This document shows, one piece after another, positions 42,038 through 64,000 of a stretch of 64,000 bases of DNA. The stretch comes from Magallana gigas (lineage: Eukaryota). The notes below the pieces were generated by a model, which did no database searches, was not told the DNA's origin, and saw nothing but the letters and a program-made list of their open reading frames with translations. The translations under genes and the position numbers were made by a program. The first letter of the stretch is position 1. Each line of letters starts with the position of its first letter. The DNA lies in the NCBI RefSeq assembly GCF_963853765.1, contig NC_088860.1:3038001-3102000 (forward strand). The letters are read 5' to 3'.

Positions 42038-42120
42038 TATCAATGTTTACATGATAAATACAGATATCAATGTGTACATGATAAATACAGATATCAATGT
42101 TTACATGATAAATACAGATA
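42038..42120. repeat. 27-bp tandem repeat x3 downstream of the ERGIC1 stop (likely 3' UTR)
   Basis: TATCAATGT(T/G)TACATGATAAATACAGA repeated three times. Confidence 0.9.
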
Positions 42121-47753: not shown

Positions 47754-47881
47754 ACAAACGTACATACATTAAAACTATTACATTGGATGCCTGTATCTAT
47801 GCTAAAACGTCACTCGTACAAACGTACATACATTAAAACTATTGCATTGGATGCCTGTATCTATGCTAAAACGTCACTCGT
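47754..47881. repeat. 64-bp tandem duplication just downstream of the paralogue B stop
   Basis: ACAAACGTACATACATTAAAACTATT...CACTCGT twice, with one substitution. Confidence 0.9.
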
Positions 47882-52646: not shown

Positions 52647-54528
52647 GCACATTTTGTGTCCAAAGGTAGGCGCTGGTTTACATGTGCATGAAATTGAAGT
52701 TGTAAACAGGAACTGAATCCACACGCAAATCTTATGATATATCTATATTCTAAAAATATGTTGTGTTTTCTTGGAACGGAACTCCGATGATCTGATTTTA
52801 CTTCCTTTAAGTTCTTTTTTTTTTAGTTCTCTCTGTACACCACGTACCACACTGATATATTCACAAGTTTGGTTACTCTTTACAGAAGACAAGGACATTG
52901 TAAATTTTGTGGACGAATGTAAATAAAAACATGTTAAAGTAGTCCTACACTTTTTAAATTTATCCCTTTTAACTAAAATTGTACAAGATCTGATCAATGT
53001 TGGAGTGAGCCTTGTCAATGTGCTAATTATTATACAATTCATTGGCATATCTTTCCTTAGGGTTGTAATAATGATAATTTCATACTTGTCGGTTCTGGGC
53101 TCTCTAAATTAGAAATACTAGAAAATAAAATTAATGTTCTGTTTTGATGTCTGGGGGTGGGAGTGGGGGGCGTGCTACTTGAACATATGACATGCAGTAT
53201 ATAGCCCCCATATCTCTCTGATGCTGCCAGTTTCATTTTCATTCCTATATATAACTATGACTTGAGCAGCTATTTCAAGTTTTAAAAAACGAGAGACATG
53301 AAAATGAAAAAAATAATTTTTTAAAATTCATTAGTCAGCCGGCGAGCATGTTGAACGTGCACCAGTAAGAGAGTATTGAGAAATCAAGGTGTTATTTCCC
53401 AAGAATGTTTTACTGAGGGACTTTATTCTAACAAAGTACATGTGTATGCGAATTTAAATGGACACTGAAGTCACGAACATTAAGGGGGGATTTGGAAAGC
53501 ACGTGTCTGTGTTTACTGCGCTAACCGCTGGGTGCTCGGTCGAGCGCGACGTCAGTACACCCGTGACAATACACAACAATCGCTGATGGGATTCAGGAAG
53601 AGGACTAGAAGTTTCAGAAGCTAGATAAATTCTGATCGAGGAGACTGATTATAGTGGGGCTATGTCTGTGAAGCGGCCTGAAGCTGTCAGGCAGTGAGGC
53701 GGTCCCAGACTCAGTACCCAGACCAAGCAGGAAGTGTTATTGGTAAGATACGTAAACAGAGTCAGAAACTAGAGGCAGCGGGTCTATACATTACGAACGG
53801 GTAATTCAGGACATTGAATCAGGGGGAAGGGGGGGGGGGTAACCAGAGAGGTGTTTTCTTGACACTCCAAAGAGCCAGTGGCTGGGGTTAGTAGGGGGTA
53901 GGAGGTTAGATTTATAGGCTAAATTTTTTGTCTCTTTAATCATATGATTGATTAGTTTCAGTCCTTTGTAATATTGAAACTGACATGCTGAATATTTTCC
54001 TAACAATGAGTCATCTGAACAACAGGATTTTAAGAACTGTCATAATTTGGATAGTTTAATTATAAGGGTTAACCAGGTACGAAGGCATCGTTTTTGAAAG
54101 GGGGGGGGGGGCAGACTCATCAAAAAAATCTTGACAAGAAAAAATCAAAGTACTGATGTACTGATTGGAGTTGATTTTATCAAACATTATTTATTTTAAA
54201 ATCAACGATCACCAGAGGGCGCGTTCCGCAAGCTTCACTAACTGTTGAGGTATAGAATAGGGTACTTTTTATATCCCATAACCAGGCACTATAACCAGGA
54301 TGTGCGCATGCGTGAATCAACTTTCCATCGGGATCGGTAAACGATTGGGAGGAAATTCGAAAGCTATTTGGAGGAACTTCGAACTGATATATGTGCAATT
54401 TAAAAATGCGATTTTTATATGAAAAATATGATCAGAAGTGATTAAAATGTTATGTATATTAGATTTTACACCAAAAAATTAAATAAATAATTGAGAGAAC
54501 AATCAAAATCAATGTTACAGGAAAACAA

Positions 54529-54899
54529 CAGGCACTTAGCATCGGAGGGGGGGGGGGGGGGTTCGAATGGGGGCAGGGACAGGGGGACGGGACTGCCCCC
54601 CCCCTCCAGCACACGTTTTCTCGCAGCAAATATTTTTCTTGGATTTACTTATAAAAAAGGAAATTAACATACAGTTGCACCCCCCCCCCCCCCCCCAATG
54701 TTTTTGGGACCATGTAAAATTTGAAATGAAAGAGAGGAAATAAACTGTGAAATTGAAGTTAAAGGTACACTTAGCCCCCTACCCCCACGGATTAGGATTT
54801 TCAATTATTTAAAAAGTATTTTTGAGTTGGGTTTTTTTTTTCAAGGCAAGATTGGATGAGTCTGCCCTCAACCCACTTTGCTACGATGCTAGGTGCCTG
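54529..54899. mobile_element. Nested MITE, same insertion as 813-1178
   Basis: AACAA|CAGGCACTTAGCATCG ... CGATGCTAGGTGCCTG|AACAA. Confidence 0.8.
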
Positions 54900-55149
54900 A
54901 ACAAAATATCATGGTTTCATTACATACATGTATGCTAGTATAAAGACTTTATGTAAACCAATATTATCTCGTGCATTGTTCCATTCACCAGGTTCTACAA
55001 ATACCTTAGTCCAAAATAAATAAAAAATCCAAGACTAGGAGGGGAAGAAAGAGGAAATCTATTTTCCTTTTTTTTTTTTACTCAGGAGCTATTTTGTTGG
55101 GGGGGGGGGATTAGGGGTGAACAGGTCACTGACCCCTTGTAGATCTACC

Positions 55150-58126
55150 CATGACCTATCACCAGGGTCTGTATACACATAACCAGGGTCAGTATACCCA
55201 TCACCAGGGTCAGAGTACGTATCACCAGAGTCTGTGTGCCCATCACCAGAGTCTGTACACCCATAACCAGGGCTAGTATACCCACCACCAGGGTCTCCAT
55301 ACCTATCACCAGGGTCAGAGTACGTATCACCAGAGTCTGTGTGCCCATCACCAGAGTCTGTACACCCATAACCAGGGTCAGTATACCCATCACCAGGGTC
55401 TTCATACCTATCACCAGGGTCAGAGTGCGTGTCACCAGAGTCTGTGTGCCCATCACCAGGGTCTGGATACCCATAACCAGGGTCAGTATACCCATCACCA
55501 GGGTCTTCATACCTATCACCAGGGTCAGAGAACGTATCACCAGAGTCTGTGTGCCCATCACAAGTGTCAGTATACACATAACCAGGGCCAGTATACCCAT
55601 CACCAGGGTCTTCATACCTATCACCAGGGTCAGAGTACGTATCACCAGAGTCTGTGTGCTCATCACCAGGGTCTGTATACCCATAACAGGGCCAGTATAC
55701 CTATCACCAGGGTCTCCATACCTATCACCAGGGTCAGAGTACGTATCACCAGAGTCTGTGTGCCCATCACCAGAGTCTGTACACCCATAACCATGGCCAG
55801 TATACCCATCACCAGGGTCTCCATACCTATCACCAGGGTCAGAGTATGTGTCACCAGAGTTTGTGTGCCCATCACCAGGGTCTGGATACCCATAACCAGG
55901 GTCAGTATACCCATCACCAGGGTCTCCATACCTATCACCAGGGTCAGAGTACGTATCACCAGAGTCTGTGTGCCCATCACCAGAGTCGGTACACCCATAA
56001 CCAGGGCCAGTATACCCATCACCAGGGTCTTCATACCTATCACCAGGGTTAGAGTATGTGTCACCAGAGTTTGTGTGCCCATCACCAGGGTCTGGACACC
56101 CATAACCAGGGTCAGTATACCCATCACCAGGGTCTCCATACCTATCACCAGGGTCAGAGTACGTATCACCAGAGTCTGTGTGCCCATCACCAGGGTCTGT
56201 ATACCCATAACCAGGGTCAGTATACCCATCACCAGGGCCTCCATACCTATCACCAGGGTCAGAGTACGTATCACCAGAGTTTGTGTGCCCATCACCAGGG
56301 TCTGGATACCCATAACCAGGGTCAGTATACCTATTACCAGGGTCTCCATACCTATCACTAGGGTCAGAGTACGTATCACCAGAGTCTGTGTGCCCTTCAC
56401 CAGAGTCTGTACACCCATAACCAGGGCCAGTATACCCATCACCAGGGTCTCCATACCTATCACCAGGGTCAGAGTATGTGTCACCAGAGTTTGTGTGCCC
56501 ATCACCAGGGTCTGGATACCCATAACCAGGGTCAGTATACCCATCACCAGGGTCTCCATACCTATCACCAGGGTTAGAGTACGTATCACCAGAGTCTGTG
56601 TGCCCATCACCAGAGTCTGTACACCCATAACCAGGGCCAGTATACCCATCACCAGGGTCTTCATACCTATCACCAGGGTTAGAGTATGTGTCACCAGAGT
56701 TTGTGTGCCCATCACCAGGGTCTGGACACCCATAACCAGGGTCAGTATACCCAACACCAGGGTCTCCATACCTATCACCAGGGTCAGAGTACGTATCACC
56801 AGAGTCTGTGTGCCCATCACCAGGGTCTGTATACCCATAACCAGGGTCAGTATACCCATCACCAGGGCCTCCATACCTATCACCAGGGTCAGAGTACGTA
56901 TCACCAGAGTTTGTGTGCCCATCACCAGGGTCTGGATACCCATAACCAGGGTCAGTATACCTATCACCAGGGTTTCCATACCTATCACCAGGGTCAGAGT
57001 ACGTATCACCAGAGTTTGTGTGCCAATCACCAGGGTCTGTACACCCATAACCAGGGTCAGTATACCCATCACCAGGGTCTCCATACCTATCACCAGGGTC
57101 AGCGTGCGTATCACCAGAGTCTGTGTGCCCATCACCAGGGTCTGTACACCCATAACCAGGGTTGGTATACCCATCACGAGGGTCTCCATACCTATCACCA
57201 GGGTCAGAGTGCGTGTCACCAGAGTCTGTGTGCCCATCACCAGGGTCTGTACGCCAATAACCAGGGTCAGTATACCCATCACCAGGGTCTCAATACCTAT
57301 CACCAGGGTCATAGTACGTGTCACCAGAGTCTGTGTGCCTATCACCAGGGTCTGTACACCCATTACCAGGGCCAGTATACCCATCACCAGGGTCTCCATA
57401 CCTATCACCAGGATCATTATATCCATCACTAGAGTTTGTGTGCCCAACAATGGGGTCTGTACACCCATCACCAGGGTCAGTATACCAATCACCCGGGTCT
57501 GTACACCCATAACCAGGGTCAGTATACCCATCACCAGGGTCTTCATATCTATCACCAGGATCAGAGTACGTATCACCAGAGTCTGTACACCCATAACCAG
57601 GGTCAGTATACCCATCACCAGGGTATGTACACCCATAACCAGGGTCATTATACCCATCACCAGGGTATGTACACCCATAAGCAGGGTCAGTATATCCATC
57701 ACCAGGGTCTCAATACCTATCACCTGGGTCAGAGTACGTATCACCAGAGTCTGTGTGCTCATGACCAGGGTCTGTACATCCATAGCCAAAGTCAGTATAC
57801 CCATCACCCGGGTCTCAATACCTATCACCAGGGTCATAATGCCTATCACCAGAGTCAGAGTACGTATCACCAGAACTGTAAACATATCACCTGGGTCATT
57901 ATACCTTTTAGTAGGGTCAGTGTTCGTAGTACTAGGGTCTGTGTGCCCATCATCATGGTCTGTATATTCATAACAAAGGTCAGTTTACCCTTCACCAGGG
58001 TCTTAATACTTTTCACCAGGATAGTGTACGCATGCATCAATAGGGTCTGTGTGCCCATCACCAGGGTCAGTATACCTAACACAACAGTCAGTGCACTTAT
58101 CATTAGAGTTTGTATATCCATTACCT
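55150..58126 (-). repeat. 105-bp (5x21) satellite in minus orientation, degenerating toward 58126
   Basis: CCCATCACCAGGGTC... units. Homogeneous to ~57400, then progressively diverged. Confidence 0.97.
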
Positions 58127-58129
58127 GAG

Positions 58130-61100
58130 TCAGGTAATACTGACCCTGTTGATAAGTAGAGTGACCCTGGTGATAGGTATACTGATCCTGGTGAAGAGCA
58201 CACATACCTTGGTGATACGTACACTCATGATCCTTGTGATAGGTATACTGTCTCAGGTGATGGTTATACTTACCCTGGTTATAGATTTTGAGATTCTGGT
58301 GTTACGTATGCTGACCCTTAGAATATCTACACGTTTGTGTATACCGACTCTGGTGATGGATACATACTGACCCCTGTGATTGGCTACAGACCCTTGTGAT
58401 ACGTACACTGACTCTGTCGATAGCTATACTGACCCTGGTGATAGAGAATGTGATAGATATACCGGTGATAAATGTACTGACTCTTGTGATAGGTATACTG
58501 ACCTTGGAGATGGGCCCTCAGACCCACGGATGCGTACACTGACACGGCCGTTAGGTAAACTAACTCTGGTGATAGGTAATAGGTACAGTTATCCCGGTGA
58601 AAGTCTACTGATCAAGGTAATGGATGTACAAACCCTGAAGATAAGTGCACTGACTGTTGTGATAGATATACTGACCCTAATGATGGGCACACAGACCCTA
58701 TTGATTCGTAAACTATTCCTGGTGATAAGTATTTAGACCCTGGTGATGGGCATACTGGCCCTGGTTATGGGCGTACAGACTCTGGTGATGGGCACACAGA
58801 CTCTGGTGATACGTACTCTGACCCTGGTGATTGGTATGATGACACTGGTGATGGGTATACTGACACTGGTTATGGGTGTACAGACTCTGGTGATGGGCAC
58901 ACAGACTCTGGTAATACGTACTCTGACCCTGGTGATAGGTATGGAGGCCCTGGTGATAGGTATACTGACCCTGGTTATGGGTATCCAGACCCTGGTGATG
59001 GGCACACAAACTCTGGTGACACGTACTCTGACCCTGGTGATAGGTATGGAGACCCTGGTGATGGGTATACTGGCCCTGGTTATGGGTGTACAGACTCTGG
59101 TGAAGGGCACACAGACTCTGGTGATACGTACTCTGACCCTGGTGATAGGTATGGAGACCCTGGTGATGGGTATACTGGCCATGGTTATGGGTATACAGAC
59201 CCTGGTGATGGGCACACAGACTCTGGTGATACGTACTCTGACCCTGGTGATAGGTATGGAGACCCTGGTGATAGGTATACTGACCCTGGTTATGGGTATC
59301 CAGACCCTGGTGATGGGCACACAAACTCTGGTTACACGTACTCTGACCCTGGTGATAGGTATGGAGACCCTGGTGATGGGTATACTGACCCTGGTTATGG
59401 GTATCCAGACCCTGGTGATGGGCACACAAACTCTGGTGACACATACTCTGACCCTGGTGATAGGTATGGAGATCCTGGTGATGGGTATACTGGCCATGGT
59501 TATGGGTGTACAGACTCTGGTGATGGGCACACAGACTCTGGTGATACGTACTCTAACCCTGGTGATAGGTATGGAGACCCTGGTGATGGGTATACTGACC
59601 CTGGTTATGGGTATCCAGACCCTGGTGATGGGCACACAGACTCTGGTGATACGTACTCTGACCCTGGTGATAGGTATGAAGACCCTGGTGATGGGTATAC
59701 TGACCCTGGTTATGGGTATCCAGACCCTGGTGATGGGCACACAGACTCTGGTGACACGCACTCTGACCCTGGTGATAGGTATGAAGACCCTGGTGATGGG
59801 TATACTGACCCTGGTTATGGGTGTACAGACTCTGGTGATGGGCACACAGACTCTGGTGATACGTACTCTGACCCTGGTGATAGGTATGGAGACCCTGGTG
59901 ATGGGTATACTGACCCTGGTTATGGGTATCCAGACCCTGGTGATGGGCACACAAACTCTGGTGACACATACTCTGACCCTGGTGATAGGTATGGAGACCC
60001 TTGTGATGGGTATACTGGCCCTGGTTATGGGTGTACAGACTCTGGTGAAGGGCACACAGACTCTGGTGATACGTACTCTGACCCTGGTGATAGGTATGGA
60101 GACCCTGGTGATAGGTATACTGACCCTGGTTATGGGTATCCAGACCCTGGTGATGGGCACACAGACTCTGGTGATACGTACTCTGACCCTGGTGATAGGT
60201 ATGAAGACCCTGGTGATTGGTATACTGACCCTGGTTATGGGTATCCAGACCCTGGTGATGGGCACACAGACTCTGGTGACACGCACTCTGACCCTGGTGA
60301 TAGGTATGAAGACCCTGGTGATGGGTATACTGACCCTGGTTATGGGTGTACAGACTCTGGTGATGGGCACACAGACTCTGGTGATACGTACTCTGACCCT
60401 GGTGATAGGTATGGAGACCCTGGTGATGGGTATACTGACCCTGGTTATGGGTATCCAGACCCTGGTGATGGGCACACAAACTCTGGTGACACATACTCTG
60501 ACCCTGGTGATAGGTATGGAGACCCTTGTGATGGGTATACTGGCCCTGGTTATGGGTGTACAGACTCTGGTGAAGGGCACACAGACTCTGGTGATACGTA
60601 CTCTGACCCTGGTGATAGGTATGGAGACCCTGGTGATAGGTATACTGACCCTGGTTATGGGTATCCAGACCCTGGTGATGGGCAAACAAACTCTGGTGAT
60701 ACGTACTCTGACCCTGGTGATAGGTATGGAGACCCTTGTGATGGGTATACTGACCCTGGTTATGGGTATACAGACCCTGGTGATGGGCACACAAACTCTG
60801 GTGATACGTACTCTGACCCTGGTGATAGGTATGGAGGCCCTGGTGATGGGTATACTGACCCTGGTTATGGGTATACAGACCCTGGTGATGGGCACACAGA
60901 CTCTGGTGATACGTACTCTGACCCTGGTGATAGGTATGGAGACCCTGGTGATGGGTATACTGACCCTGGTTATGGGTGTCCAGACCCTGGTGATGGGCAC
61001 ACAAACTCTGGTGACACATACTCTAACCCTGGTGATAGGTATGAAGACCCTGGTGATGGGTATACTGGCCCTGGTTATGGGTGTACAGACTCTGGTGATG

Positions 61101-64000
61101 GGCACACAGACTCTGGTGATACGTACTCTGACCCTGGTGATAGGTATGGAGACCCTGGTGATGGGTATACTGACCCTGGTTATGGGTATCCAGACCCTGG
61201 TGATGGGCACACAAACTCTGGTGACACATACTCTGACCCTGGTGATAGGTATGGAGACCCTGGTGATGGGTATACTGGCCATGGTTATGGGTGTACAGAC
61301 TCTGGTGATGGGCACACAGACTATGGTGATACGTACTCTAACCCTGGTGATAGGTATGGAGACCCTGGTGATGGGTATACTGGCCCTGTTATGGGTATAC
61401 AGACCCTGGTGATGGGCACACAGACTCTGGTGATACGTACTCTGACCCTGGTGATAGGTATGGAGACCCTGGTGATTGGTATACTGGCCCTGTTATGGGT
61501 ATACAGACCCTGGTGATGAGCACACAGACTCTGGTGATACGTACTCTGACCCTGGTGATAGGTATGAAGACCCTGGTGATGGGTATACTGGCCCTGGTTA
61601 TGTGTATACTGACACTTGTGATGGGCACACAGACTCTGGTGATACGTTCTCTGACCCTGGTGATAGGTATGAAGACCCTGGTGATGGGTATACTGACCCT
61701 GGTTATGGGTATCCAGACCCTGGTGATGGGCACACAGACTCTGGTGACACATACTCTGACCCTGGTGATAGGTATGGAGACCCTTGTGATGGGTATACTG
61801 GCCCTGGTTATGGGTGTACAGACTCTGGTGAAGGGCACACAGACTCTGGTGATACGTACTCTGACCCTGGTGATAGGTATGGAGACCCTGGTGATGGGTA
61901 TACTGGCCCTGGTTATGGGTATACAGACCCTGGTGATGGGCACACAGACTCTGGTGATACGTACTCTGACCCTGGTGATAGGTATGGAGACCCTGGTGAT
62001 AGGTATACTGACCCTGGTTATGGGTATCCAGACCCTGGTGATGGGCACACAAACTCTGGTTACACGTACTCTGACCCTGGTGATAGGTATGGAGACCCTG
62101 GTGATGGGTATACTGACCCTGGTTATGGGTATCCAGACCCTGGTGATGGGCACACAAACTCTGGTGACACATACTCTGACCCTGGTGATAGGTATGGAGA
62201 CCCTGGTGATGGGTATACTGGCCATGGTTATGGGTGTACAGACTCTGGTGATGGGCACACAGACTCTGGTGATACGTACTCTAACCCTGGTGATAGGTAT
62301 GGAGACCCTGGTGATGGGTATACTGACCCTGGTTATGGGTATCCAGACCCTGGTGATGGGCACACAGACTCTGGTGATACGTACTCTGACCCTGGTGATA
62401 GGTATGAAGACCCTGGTGATGGGTATACTGACCCTGGTTATGGGTATCCAGACCCTGGTGATGGGCACACAGACTCTGGTGACACGCACTCTGACCCTGG
62501 TGATAGGTATGAAGACCCTGGTGATGGGTATACTGACCCTGGTTATGGGTGTACAGACTCTGGTGATGGGCACACAGACTCTGGTGATACGTACTCTGAC
62601 CCTGGTGATAGGTATGGAGACCCTGGTGATGGGTATACTGACCCTGGTTATGGGTATCCAGACCCTGGTGATGGGCACACAAACTCTGGTGACACATACT
62701 CTGACCCTGGTGATAGGTATGGAGACCCTTGTGATGGGTATACTGGCCCTGGTTATGGGTGTACAGACTCTGGTGAAGGGCACACAGACTCTGGTGATAC
62801 GTACTCTGACCCTGGTGATAGGTATGGAGACCCTGGTGATAGGTATACTGACCCTGGTTATGGGTATCCAGACCCTGGTGATGGGCACACAGACTCTGGT
62901 GATACGTACTCTGACCCTGGTGATAGGTATGAAGACCCTGGTGATTGGTATACTGACCCTGGTTATGGGTATCCAGACCCTGGTGATGGGCACACAGACT
63001 CTGGTGACACGCACTCTGACCCTGGTGATAGGTATGAAGACCCTGGTGATGGGTATACTGACCCTGGTTATGGGTGTACAGACTCTGGTGATGGGCACAC
63101 AGACTCTGGTGATACGTACTCTGACCCTGGTGATAGGTATGGAGACCCTGGTGATGGGTATACTGACCCTGGTTATGGGTATCCAGACCCTGGTGATGGG
63201 CACACAAACTCTGGTGACACATACTCTGACCCTGGTGATAGGTATGGAGACCCTTGTGATGGGTATACTGGCCCTGGTTATGGGTGTACAGACTCTGGTG
63301 AAGGGCACACAGACTCTGGTGATACGTACTCTGACCCTGGTGATAGGTATGGAGACCCTGGTGATAGGTATACTGACCCTGGTTATGGGTATCCAGACCT
63401 TGGTGATGGGCACACAAACTCTGGTGATACGTACTCTGACCCTGGTGATAGGTATGGAGACCCTTGTGATGGGTATACTGACCCTGGTTATGGGTATACA
63501 GACCCTGGTGATGGGCACACAAACTCTGGTGATACGTACTCTGACCCTGGTGATAGGTATGGAGGCCCTGGTGATGGGTATACTGACCCTGGTTATGGGT
63601 ATACAGACCCTGGTGATGGGCACACAGACTCTGGTGATACGTACTCTGACCCTGGTGATAGGTATGGAGACCCTGGTGATGGGTATACTGACCCTGGTTA
63701 TGGGTGTCCAGACCCTGGTGATGGGCACACAAACTCTGGTGACACATACTCTAACCCTGGTGATAGGTATGAAGACCCTGGTGATGGGTATACTGGCCCT
63801 GGTTATGGGTGTACAGACTCTGGTGATGGGCACACAGACTCTGGTGATACGTACTCTGACCCTGGTGATAGGTATGGAGACCCTGGTGATGGGTATACTG
63901 ACCCTGGTTATGGGTATCCAGACCCTGGTGATGGGCACACAAACTCTGGTGATACGTACTCTGACCCTGGTGATAGGTATGGAGACCCTGGTGATTGGTA
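58130..64000 (+). repeat. 105-bp (5x21) satellite in plus orientation; degenerate to ~58735, then homogeneous with higher-order duplications
   Basis: Variant spacing of 525 bp (GAAGGGC at 60047 and 60572) and 2728 bp (GTGATTGG at 60213 and 62941; near-identical 488-aa read-throughs at 59553-61019 and 62281-63747). Confidence 0.97.

Follow-up and report, generated by a model that had tools for sequence, protein, structure and literature searches.

The closest described systems to the locus reported here come from Drosophila and from the oyster itself. Drosophila FB elements have a target-site duplication of 9 bp and Galileo elements one of 7 bp, many Mutator ends begin with GAG, and P and Galileo elements end in CA.... 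The subterminal binding site of the Galileo transposase is repeated within the tandem repeats of that element (PMC3688188). In the oyster Crassostrea/Magallana gigas, the satellite CgiSat33, with a GC content of 53% and a share of 0.05% of the genome, was published in 2021 as a table entry without organisational context (Tunjic-Cvitanic et al., PMC8268682). We analysed a window of 64,000 bp, the whole stretch of DNA considered here (G000:C8:3038001-3102000), and conclude with a probability of about 0.9 that its right-hand part belongs, as one copy, to a non-autonomous foldback family of class II (cut-and-paste) transposons.

This copy, E1, is 12,673 bp long, the window holding its left 77% (54247-64000) and its far end lying 2.9 kb past the window. 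A preliminary description had recognised a sharp terminus at 54246; this terminus is real and common to the copies, but the T at 54246 differs between copies and is the final base of a perfect 7-bp target-site duplication, AACTGTT (54240-54246; right copy L031:2920-2926, adjoining the far end), so that the first base of E1 is 54247 (GAGGTATAGAATAGGG...). From here the A-side terminal segment extends over 907 bp of non-satellite sequence (54247-55153, plus strand), as its earlier estimate of ~900 bp had suggested, and forms the outer domain of a giant terminal inverted repeat. Within it lie the subterminal motifs CCCATAACCAGG and ATAACCAGG (54275-54299, plus strand), which are kept in 22 of 22 aligned termini, agree exactly with the core of a single 21-bp unit of the satellite and represent, judged from sequence, a candidate transposase-binding site. 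The longest ORF starting within this segment comprises 58 aa, and a 72-aa minus-strand ORF covers its first 152 bp and continues into the flank. E1 is inserted in a very high-copy host repeat (54044-54246), at which short-read Logan contigs break; the loose contig ends found there belong to other copies of this host repeat, and presence or absence of E1 is not readable from them.

Tandem Repeats Finder delimited satellite arrays at 55154-57905 and 58667-64000, in opposite orientation as described before, and a third piece at 1-502. The homogeneous array of the A arm (55154-57905, minus strand) comprises 26 copies of the 105-bp monomer (5 x 21 bp) and that of the B arm (58667-64000, plus strand) runs on to about window-equivalent position 66020 (L031:1-2020), their consensus sequences agreeing with CgiSat33 (Data S1 of PMC8268682) at 105/105 positions for the left and 104/105 for the right arm. 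The region between both arrays, previously taken for a spacer of ~490 bp, is no spacer: 57906-58666 is degenerate 21-bp satellite of both arms placed head-to-head at 58129, where the orientation switches. One half of the supposed spacer belongs to the A arm (57906-58128, minus strand), and the repeats at 58130-58666 (plus strand) belong to the B arm. The centre itself is formed by the palindrome ATTACCTGA-G-TCAGGTAAT (58120-58138). Beyond the right array we found the mirror terminal segment that the foldback interpretation called for, inverted at C8:3104022-3104919 (L031:2022-2919, minus strand) and ~99-99.9% identical to the A-side segment. The arms of E1 are unequal, the A arm measuring 3,882 bp and the B arm 8,790 bp. 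In one polyA raw-read run, positions 54230-54540 were weakly covered with a strand bias (depth 5-10 versus <1); we considered hairpin RNA from E1, for which this signal is too weak to make a claim, poly-G/poly-C artefact peaks being present as well.

We read 12 copies in full, nine young and three old, of which 11 are complete and one carries a 12.9-kb insertion. All 12 follow one plan of terminal segment, satellite arm, asymmetric centre, inverted arm and inverted terminal segment. The eight young complete copies span 7.7-14 kb, each being one giant imperfect palindrome with outer segments of ~900 bp. The arms are made of 21-bp and 105-bp tandem units, are 2.5-8.8 kb long with A and B lengths differing within and between copies, and meet at a point centre in 12/12 copies with no middle domain; a true spacer or middle domain was rejected as sensitive blastn matches to the monomer extend all the way to the centre on either side in all copies. 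The central palindrome is likewise kept in 12/12 copies, and its asymmetric surroundings confer polarity on the element. The centre ±1 kb is orthologous (92-99% identity among young copies, 82-85% between young and old), occurs in both genomic orientations among the copies, and the two arms are only 64-81% complementary within 630 bp of it. Folded as single-stranded DNA, 57985-58285 yields -66 kcal/mol (z = -9.6). Very long inverted repeats, tandem-repeat arms, fixed-length duplications and dispersed conserved termini, the four features of the foldback group that we examined, were all found.

A second copy, E0 (C8:3025444-3039460, 14,017 bp), lies mostly upstream of the window and ends within its first 1,460 bp, as had been proposed. 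The window contains the outer end of its B-arm CgiSat33 array (1-561, plus strand), its right terminal segment (562-1460, minus strand, ~900 bp of non-satellite sequence ending ...CTATACCTC at 1460) and its right target-site duplication AGCGGTC (1461-1467, 7 bp; left copy C8:3025437-3025443). When reverse-complemented, 562-1460 aligns end-to-end with 54247-55153 at ~97% identity, and the similarity between E1 and E0 breaks off sharply at the terminus.

We show this family to be dispersed, in line with the earlier view. A genome-wide count of the 29-base terminus gives 67 occurrences versus 0 for the reversed control, corresponding to ~33 elements on contigs C2-C10 (9 chromosomes), and the termini read GAGGTATAGAATAGG (GAGG...). 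Of 14 end pairs, 10 are flanked by perfect 7-bp target-site duplications, each having a chance probability of ~6e-5; two copies of the old subfamily are among these. Three complete pairs lack a clean duplication, two of them located in a rearranged cluster at 47 Mb of C8 and one having a mutated end, and in a fourth pair the right end is truncated. With 67 termini against none in the control and ten perfect duplications, chance is excluded. The two terminal segments within one element are 96.8-99.9% alike and those of different young copies 97.9% on average; as copies diverge by ~2%, activity may have ceased. Between the subfamilies the outer 150 bp are conserved at 92-99%, most of the remaining terminal segment at ~72-86%.

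No transposase was found within any fully read copy and no ORFs beyond repeat artefacts in the copies read, and hits for P-type (PF21787) or MULE (PF10551) transposases are absent between any pair of foldback termini, bearing out that the element is transposase-less. The largest pair of termini (20 kb, C8:47.05 Mb), tried as an autonomous copy, holds the 12.9-kb insertion instead; 10 kb of this insertion (L044) contain no ORF of at least 150 aa, and the sole ORF of at least 150 aa in the adjoining scan (L043, 7000-10000), with 218 aa, is an array artefact. A genome search with the 15-base terminus allowing up to one mismatch returned nothing apart from foldback copies, a small number of orphan sites and a GATG... 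repeat of 22 copies that is unrelated. An autonomous partner with the same termini was thus found neither by sequence nor by terminus or protein-family search.

These data bear on the superfamily. The duplication length resembles that of Galileo (P superfamily) rather than that of Drosophila FB, and on duplication length alone we tentatively favour a P-like superfamily as a possible assignment, although the termini, GAGG..., are unlike the CA... ends of P and Galileo. P-type ORFs of 619-828 aa exist in the genome (e.g. C1:69612243, C7:38112875, C8:37956065, C9:20231602), 0 of them between foldback termini; another intact P-type element lies at C9:49150196. An element of the same kind could instead belong to the Mutator/Phantom superfamily, to which Drosophila FB and probably Tetris belong, and be mobilised by a MULE-type rather than a P-like transposase, which would agree with the Mutator assignment of most described foldback elements (Tetris paper), with a terminus beginning GAG and with 81 MULE hits in the genome, many being intact ORFs. 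We regard this as unlikely, since all 10 clean duplications measure 7 bp, a length within the 7-8 bp of the P superfamily and outside the 8-10 bp of Mutator/Phantom (8-10 bp in Tetris), and since none of the MULE hits lies between foldback termini. The likeness to FB and Mutator elements noted in the preliminary description holds for the foldback structure with its unequal modular arms and is weakened by the 7-bp duplication.

Much less probable is that no transposon is involved, a palindromic satellite locus having originated in an inverted duplication or in template switching at a fork and having spread by segmental duplication or ectopic recombination, or being an assembly artefact. At C8 46.97-47.09 Mb foldback pieces do recur at a period of ~35 kb, reflecting segmental duplication, and insertions are clustered, with 9 neighbour gaps <1.6 Mb versus 3.0 expected. 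Against such an origin, similarity stops at the same end base in all copies, the flanks are unrelated and carry perfect 7-bp direct duplications, and copies occupy nine chromosomes in both orientations. The terminal segment reaches a depth of ~35-250 times single-copy in DNA runs of three studies; ~33 dispersed copies with the same inverted architecture, the orthologous centre and multi-copy depth in three independent DNA data sets exclude a chimeric or mis-assembled join, which had been raised as a concern.

With CgiSat33 being the arm repeat, its distribution can be compared with that of the foldback family. The published GC content, abundance and chromosomal distribution (8 or 9 of 10 chromosomes in the two assemblies) agree with the foldback arrays. 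A 30-mer diagnostic of the monomer was counted 1,622 times across the genome; at 49 counts per young element, this equals ~33 elements' worth, and among the first 100 places listed 98 fall within foldback intervals. Because the monomer counts fit ~33 elements, CgiSat33 is essentially all transposon-borne and almost wholly confined to these elements, in keeping with the idea of a satellite-carrying family. The older subfamily has plain 21-bp repeats only, the younger one the 105-bp higher-order unit (5 x 21) that is CgiSat33, and identity at lag 105 exceeds that at lag 21 in the young subfamily only; as the older subfamily has 21-bp repeats only, the 105-bp unit arose inside the transposon. Array relationships were taken from a chunk-wise best-hit analysis, in which the best hit of ~40% of the 210-bp array chunks lies in their own arm, pointing to local expansion, and that of about half lies in another element, pointing to inheritance.

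Helitron/Helentron-type non-autonomous elements are the usual dispersers of satellite-like repeats in oysters, ~76% of the C. gigas satellitome resembling Helitron central repeats (PMC8268682), and CgiSat33 might be carried by one of these as well. This is very improbable given terminal inverted repeats of ~900 bp, two inverted arrays and a 7-bp duplication, all foreign to Helitrons, and given that CgiSat33 has no Repbase or Helitron match (PMC8268682); Helentron boxes and a 3' hairpin with T/T insertion site are absent from the element ends. Finally, open stretches of 840-934 codons in several frames could suggest that the arrays are exons for a repetitive protein, the 21-bp unit equalling a heptad such as G-D-G-Y-T-D-P, a reading we give next to no credence because five of six frames are open since the 21-bp unit has no stops, frames shift along the array, third codon positions are the least variable in the G-D-G-Y-T-D-P frame, the sole Pfam match (LbR_Ice_bind) is a repeat-summation artefact in which no single stretch passes, and both orientations occur within a single element that has inverted repeats and duplications at its borders.

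Our data on the foldback family suggest a model in which the whole palindrome moves as a unit producing the 7-bp target-site duplication, which would imply a DDE-type transposase acting in trans with 7-bp staggered cuts; mobilisation in trans, already suggested earlier, is what we infer from this. The outer ~150 bp, which are strongly conserved, are presumably what this enzyme recognises, perhaps together with the CCATAACCAGG-like motif located 29-53 bp from each end and recurring in the 21-bp satellite units, which would give the repeats a role as binding sites. The satellite would be born and enlarged within the element, progressing from 21-bp repeats in older to the 105-bp unit in younger copies. 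Local expansion and contraction of the arrays after insertion would explain why arms are unequal and variable between copies. The central ~1.2 kb are old, non-homogenised and poorly self-complementary and probably serve as a spacer keeping the long palindrome stable.

In the literature searched, neither CgiSat33 nor any other repeat of bivalves is linked with a foldback element. The earlier suggestion of an undescribed family would hold insofar as this foldback link is concerned, but the satellite was already catalogued as CgiSat33; by comparison with the literature the family would be new, its kind, foldback, being known already. We see slightly better than even odds that this is the first foldback family to be characterised from a mollusc, with CgiSat33 existing only as the arms of ~33 mobile palindromes, with a 105-bp unit derived from 21-bp repeats inside a transposon, and with arms of up to 8.8 kb without a loop being among the longest cut-and-paste terminal inverted repeats. 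The foldback family provides an origin and a spreading route for an unexplained oyster satellite, CgiSat33 having reached nine chromosomes via a transposon and not by self-seeding arrays, and places a second type of carrier, of cut-and-paste foldback kind, beside the Helitrons that dominate the view of satellite DNA in oysters. Its datable copies, which lead from repeats of 21 bp to a higher-order repeat of 105 bp, form a clean natural series in which the origins of higher-order satellites can be studied. Surveys of bivalve transposons based on ORFs are blind to such elements (PMC10294476). As palindromes of 8-14 kb they may also be fragile sites, serve as substrates for inversions and give rise to hairpin RNA, bearing on stability and assembly of the oyster genome. 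Should the partner be a transposase of P type, foldback evolution like that of Galileo would have taken place independently outside insects.

Comparison with known systems places the oyster family among several of these. Drosophila FB elements share with it two long inverted tandem-repeat arms with higher-order periodicity that are unequal and copy-variable, mostly non-coding copies with little or no middle domain, and target-site duplications. The oyster element differs from FB by its 7-bp duplication, its unique outer segment of ~900 bp, its much longer arms (2.5-8.8 kb) and its mollusc host, and a NOF-like or Mutator-type partner was not found for it. Among Galileo, Newton and Kepler of the Drosophila buzzatii group (P superfamily), it is Galileo whose end binding site, present also in the repeats, parallels the subterminal CCATAACCAGG motif of the oyster element. 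Galileo has inverted repeats of 0.5-1.2 kb enclosing a middle segment or transposase gene and shows a GTAGTAC target consensus, whereas the oyster arms of 2.5-8.8 kb have nothing between them and the oyster sites show no consensus resembling GTAGTAC (n=11). Tetris of Drosophila virilis is, like the oyster element, a non-autonomous foldback whose arm repeats are related to part of its terminal domain and also constitute satellite DNA, neither of both having a known autonomous copy. Tetris has duplications of 8-10 bp, a middle domain, three complete copies only and repeats that also form long stand-alone arrays; the oyster family, in contrast, has ~33 copies and its satellite is almost wholly inside elements. 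Helentron/HINE-borne repeats of C. gigas (Cg170 and others) share the host and the dispersal of a satellite across chromosomes by a mobile element. Their carriers are rolling-circle elements with one short array and neither terminal inverted repeats nor duplication, whereas the oyster foldback is a palindrome of cut-and-paste type with two inverted arrays. CgiSat33, as published a bare table entry, is here the arm repeat of a foldback transposon.

We confirm the inverted satellite arrangement and our data support its earlier interpretation: the elements at both edges of the window belong to a well-defined foldback transposon family, apparently undescribed, which accounts for a catalogued oyster satellite. 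The element E1 begins with a non-satellite terminal segment (54247-55153) showing a ~97% end-to-end match to the reverse complement of 562-1460, with the likeness of both segments ending sharply at GAGGTATAGAATAGGG. Arrays of 105-bp repeats, each composed of five 21-bp sub-units, follow at 55154-57905 in one orientation (Tandem Repeats Finder: 26 copies, 89% matches) and at 58667-64000 in the opposite orientation (51 copies, 93%), a further piece being detected by the same program at 1-502. The GC content rises from ~35% to 52% inside the arrays and the GC skew changes its sign at ~58.1 kb. Searching the window's own genome, we found the mirror terminal segment beyond the right array, which the preliminary description had named as a check, at C8:3104022-3104919 (C8 being the contig of the window) on the minus strand with 99% identity. 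E1 therefore extends from 54247 to window-equivalent 66919 and comprises 12,673 bp. The second copy reported at 1-1461 with the same terminus proved real, as 1-1460 is the right end of E0, which begins at C8:3025444 and measures 14,017 bp. The first T originally assigned to the terminus (54246) is flank, since the base preceding GAGG varies among copies.

The 29-base terminus occurs, allowing ≤2 mismatches, at 67 genome sites (30 forward, 37 reverse) on contigs C2 to C10 (reversed control 0), mostly in plus/minus pairs being 7-14 kb apart. Using the terminal segment and the monomer for mapping, we read nine young copies and three of a diverged, old subfamily. All 12 are built alike: a ~900-bp terminal segment leads into a satellite arm, the orientation flips at a single point, and a second arm and a second terminal segment follow, both inverted, bearing out a dispersed family rather than a local satellite. 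The 12 copies read contain no middle domain and the terminal segment contains no ORF longer than 72 aa. Long array ORFs were rejected as genes, as these are open only because five of the six frames of the 21-bp unit are free of stop codons. E0 and E1, 53 kb apart, are not mutual closest relatives (94.3% at the centre). Genome-wide, the insertions are clustered, with nine neighbour gaps <1.6 Mb where random placement of 34 sites would give 3.0 (P ~0.0015 under a simple model).

Proof of insertion comes from perfect direct duplications of a constant 7 bp at 10/14 end pairs (random 7-mer match ~6e-5 per pair): AACTGTT at E1, AGCGGTC at E0 (left copy), AATACTT, GTTTCAG, AGCTACG, AAGATGG, TTCTTTG and ATTTAAG at further copies, and TCACATG and ACTACTT at two old-subfamily copies. 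No strong target consensus emerges from these 7-bp sequences. The four pairs without clean duplication comprise two in the rearranged C8 47 Mb cluster, one mutated end and one truncated end. At C8:46.97-47.09 Mb (genome stretches L024 and L043-L045), foldback termini repeat with a ~35-kb period, which is a segmental tandem duplication. Each ~35-kb unit has two same-strand termini 616-626 bp apart, one terminal segment being broken at the heptamer CACTTTG (positions 629-635) with its 635-bp piece inverted beside the rest; the pattern resembles two nested insertions at a single site or an intramolecular (self-) insertion.

E1 interrupts a ~75-bp imperfect palindrome at its midpoint (TCACCAGAGGGCG...GCTTCA to either side). 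The palindrome arm has ATCACCAGAG in common with the satellite unit, perhaps by coincidence. In Logan contigs from three DNA runs of three studies, the flank at 53300-54043 shows the depth of single-copy DNA (9, 46 and 5.5), and the terminal segment reaches ~35-250 times this depth. The host repeat at 54044-54246 (and positions 2920-3000 of L031, the stretch starting at the window's right edge) is very high-copy, with a word depth of ~400 times single copy in the three DNA runs, and the contigs break within it. PolyA RNA reads cover the outer 300 bp only weakly and with strand bias. Long poly-G and poly-C runs within the terminal segment, at 54540-54600 and 54664-54700, draw RNA-seq reads by the hundreds whose loose ends are homopolymers, and we rejected these peaks as expression, being a sequencing artefact of the homopolymer runs. 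Short tandem arrays unrelated to the element are present at 5491-5712 (50 bp x 4.4), 7987-8217 (30/90 bp x 7.6), 42038-42120 (27 bp x 3.1) and 47754-47881 (64 bp x 2).

The ~490-bp spacer described between the arrays is no separate sequence: 57906-58666 consists of degenerate 21-bp satellite repeats of both arms, with the junction at base 58129 inside ATTACCTGA-G-TCAGGTAAT. This centre and its asymmetric surroundings are kept in 12/12 copies and present in both genomic orientations, showing that the element has polarity, with an A arm and a B arm. Identity across the centre ±1 kb amounts to 92-99% among young copies and to 82-85% between subfamilies; the palindrome thus predates the split of the subfamilies, having existed in their common ancestor, and is copied as a unit. 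Arm complementarity is only 64-81% within 630 bp of the centre, and 91-95% beyond 945 bp in E1 and its closest relative. Computed folding of the central 301 nt as single-stranded DNA gives a single long, imperfect hairpin (-66 kcal/mol, z = -9.6). On the B arm, ~955 bp from the centre, 4/8 young copies, i.e. E0 (L032/L033), E4 (L038), E5 (L039) and E7 (L041), carry a 135-bp relic of the terminal segment's inner end (positions 774-908, 80-84% identity), E0 having a second one; the relic marks an older, shorter arm boundary.

The array consensus matches CgiSat33 (Data S1, Tunjic-Cvitanic et al. 2021) at 105/105 positions in the left and 104/105 in the right arm, a match that also marks the genome as that of Crassostrea (Magallana) gigas or of a very close relative. 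This satellite was reported with 105 bp, 46.7% AT, 0.05% of the genome and presence on 9/10 linkage groups, without Repbase match or further discussion (PMC8268682). Our literature search found no other paper mentioning CgiSat33 and none describing a foldback element in a bivalve; the proposed novelty thus holds, apparently, for the carrier family but not for the satellite. A monomer-diagnostic 30-mer has 1,622 genome matches (control 0), which at 49 per young element equals ~33 elements' worth, agreeing with the 67 termini, and 98 of the first 100 matches listed fall inside foldback intervals, the other two being a small remnant at C1:29.53 Mb. CgiSat33 is therefore essentially all transposon-borne. 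The sole monomer matches on C1 among those listed, at C1:29527734-29528659, have no recognisable foldback terminus nearby and probably represent a copy that has decayed or survives as a fragment. In young copies, lag-105 identity (0.75-0.88, well-homogenised arms) exceeds lag-21 identity (0.69-0.74), whereas the old subfamily lacks this excess and yields the 21-bp period only in Tandem Repeats Finder. Of the 210-bp array chunks, about half are matched best by another element, indicating inheritance, and ~40% by the same arm, pointing to local amplification; same-arm best matches average 99.4% in the long B arm of E1.

Terminal segments are 96.8-99.9% identical within one element (99.9% in E1), 97.9% on average between young copies and ~85% between young and old. 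Between subfamilies, conservation is 92-99% in the outer 150 bp and ~72-86% in most of the remaining segment, a pattern to be anticipated if transposition depends on recognition of the ends. The genome contains intact P-type ORFs and many MULE ORFs; none of either type lies between foldback termini. Stop-free, equal-scoring P-type (TNP-like RNaseH) matches lie at C1:69612243, C8:37956065 and C9:20231602 (open frame 780 aa each) and at C7:38112875 (619 aa), suggesting that this genome harbours a young transposon family of the P superfamily.

FB and Mutator elements generate 9-bp duplications, so that the likeness to FB and foldback-type Mutator elements drawn in the preliminary description stands for the foldback build but not for the duplication length. 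The 7-bp duplication fits the P superfamily, whose member Galileo also has 7 bp (PMC2775673), and not Tetris with 8-10 bp (PMC4079207). At 29-53 bp from the end, CCCATAACCAGG and ATAACCAGG form the core of one satellite unit; by our rough estimate, chance alone would produce ~0.01 identities of 12 bases between the monomer and a segment of 900 bp. In Galileo, a near-terminal transposase-binding site recurs in tandem repeats (PMC3688188), and likewise the subterminal CCCATAACCAGG and ATAACCAGG of the oyster element recur in its arm repeats. As in Tetris, in which arm repeat and terminal domain have 37 bp in common (PMC4079207), the arm repeat of the oyster element shares sequence with its terminal segment.
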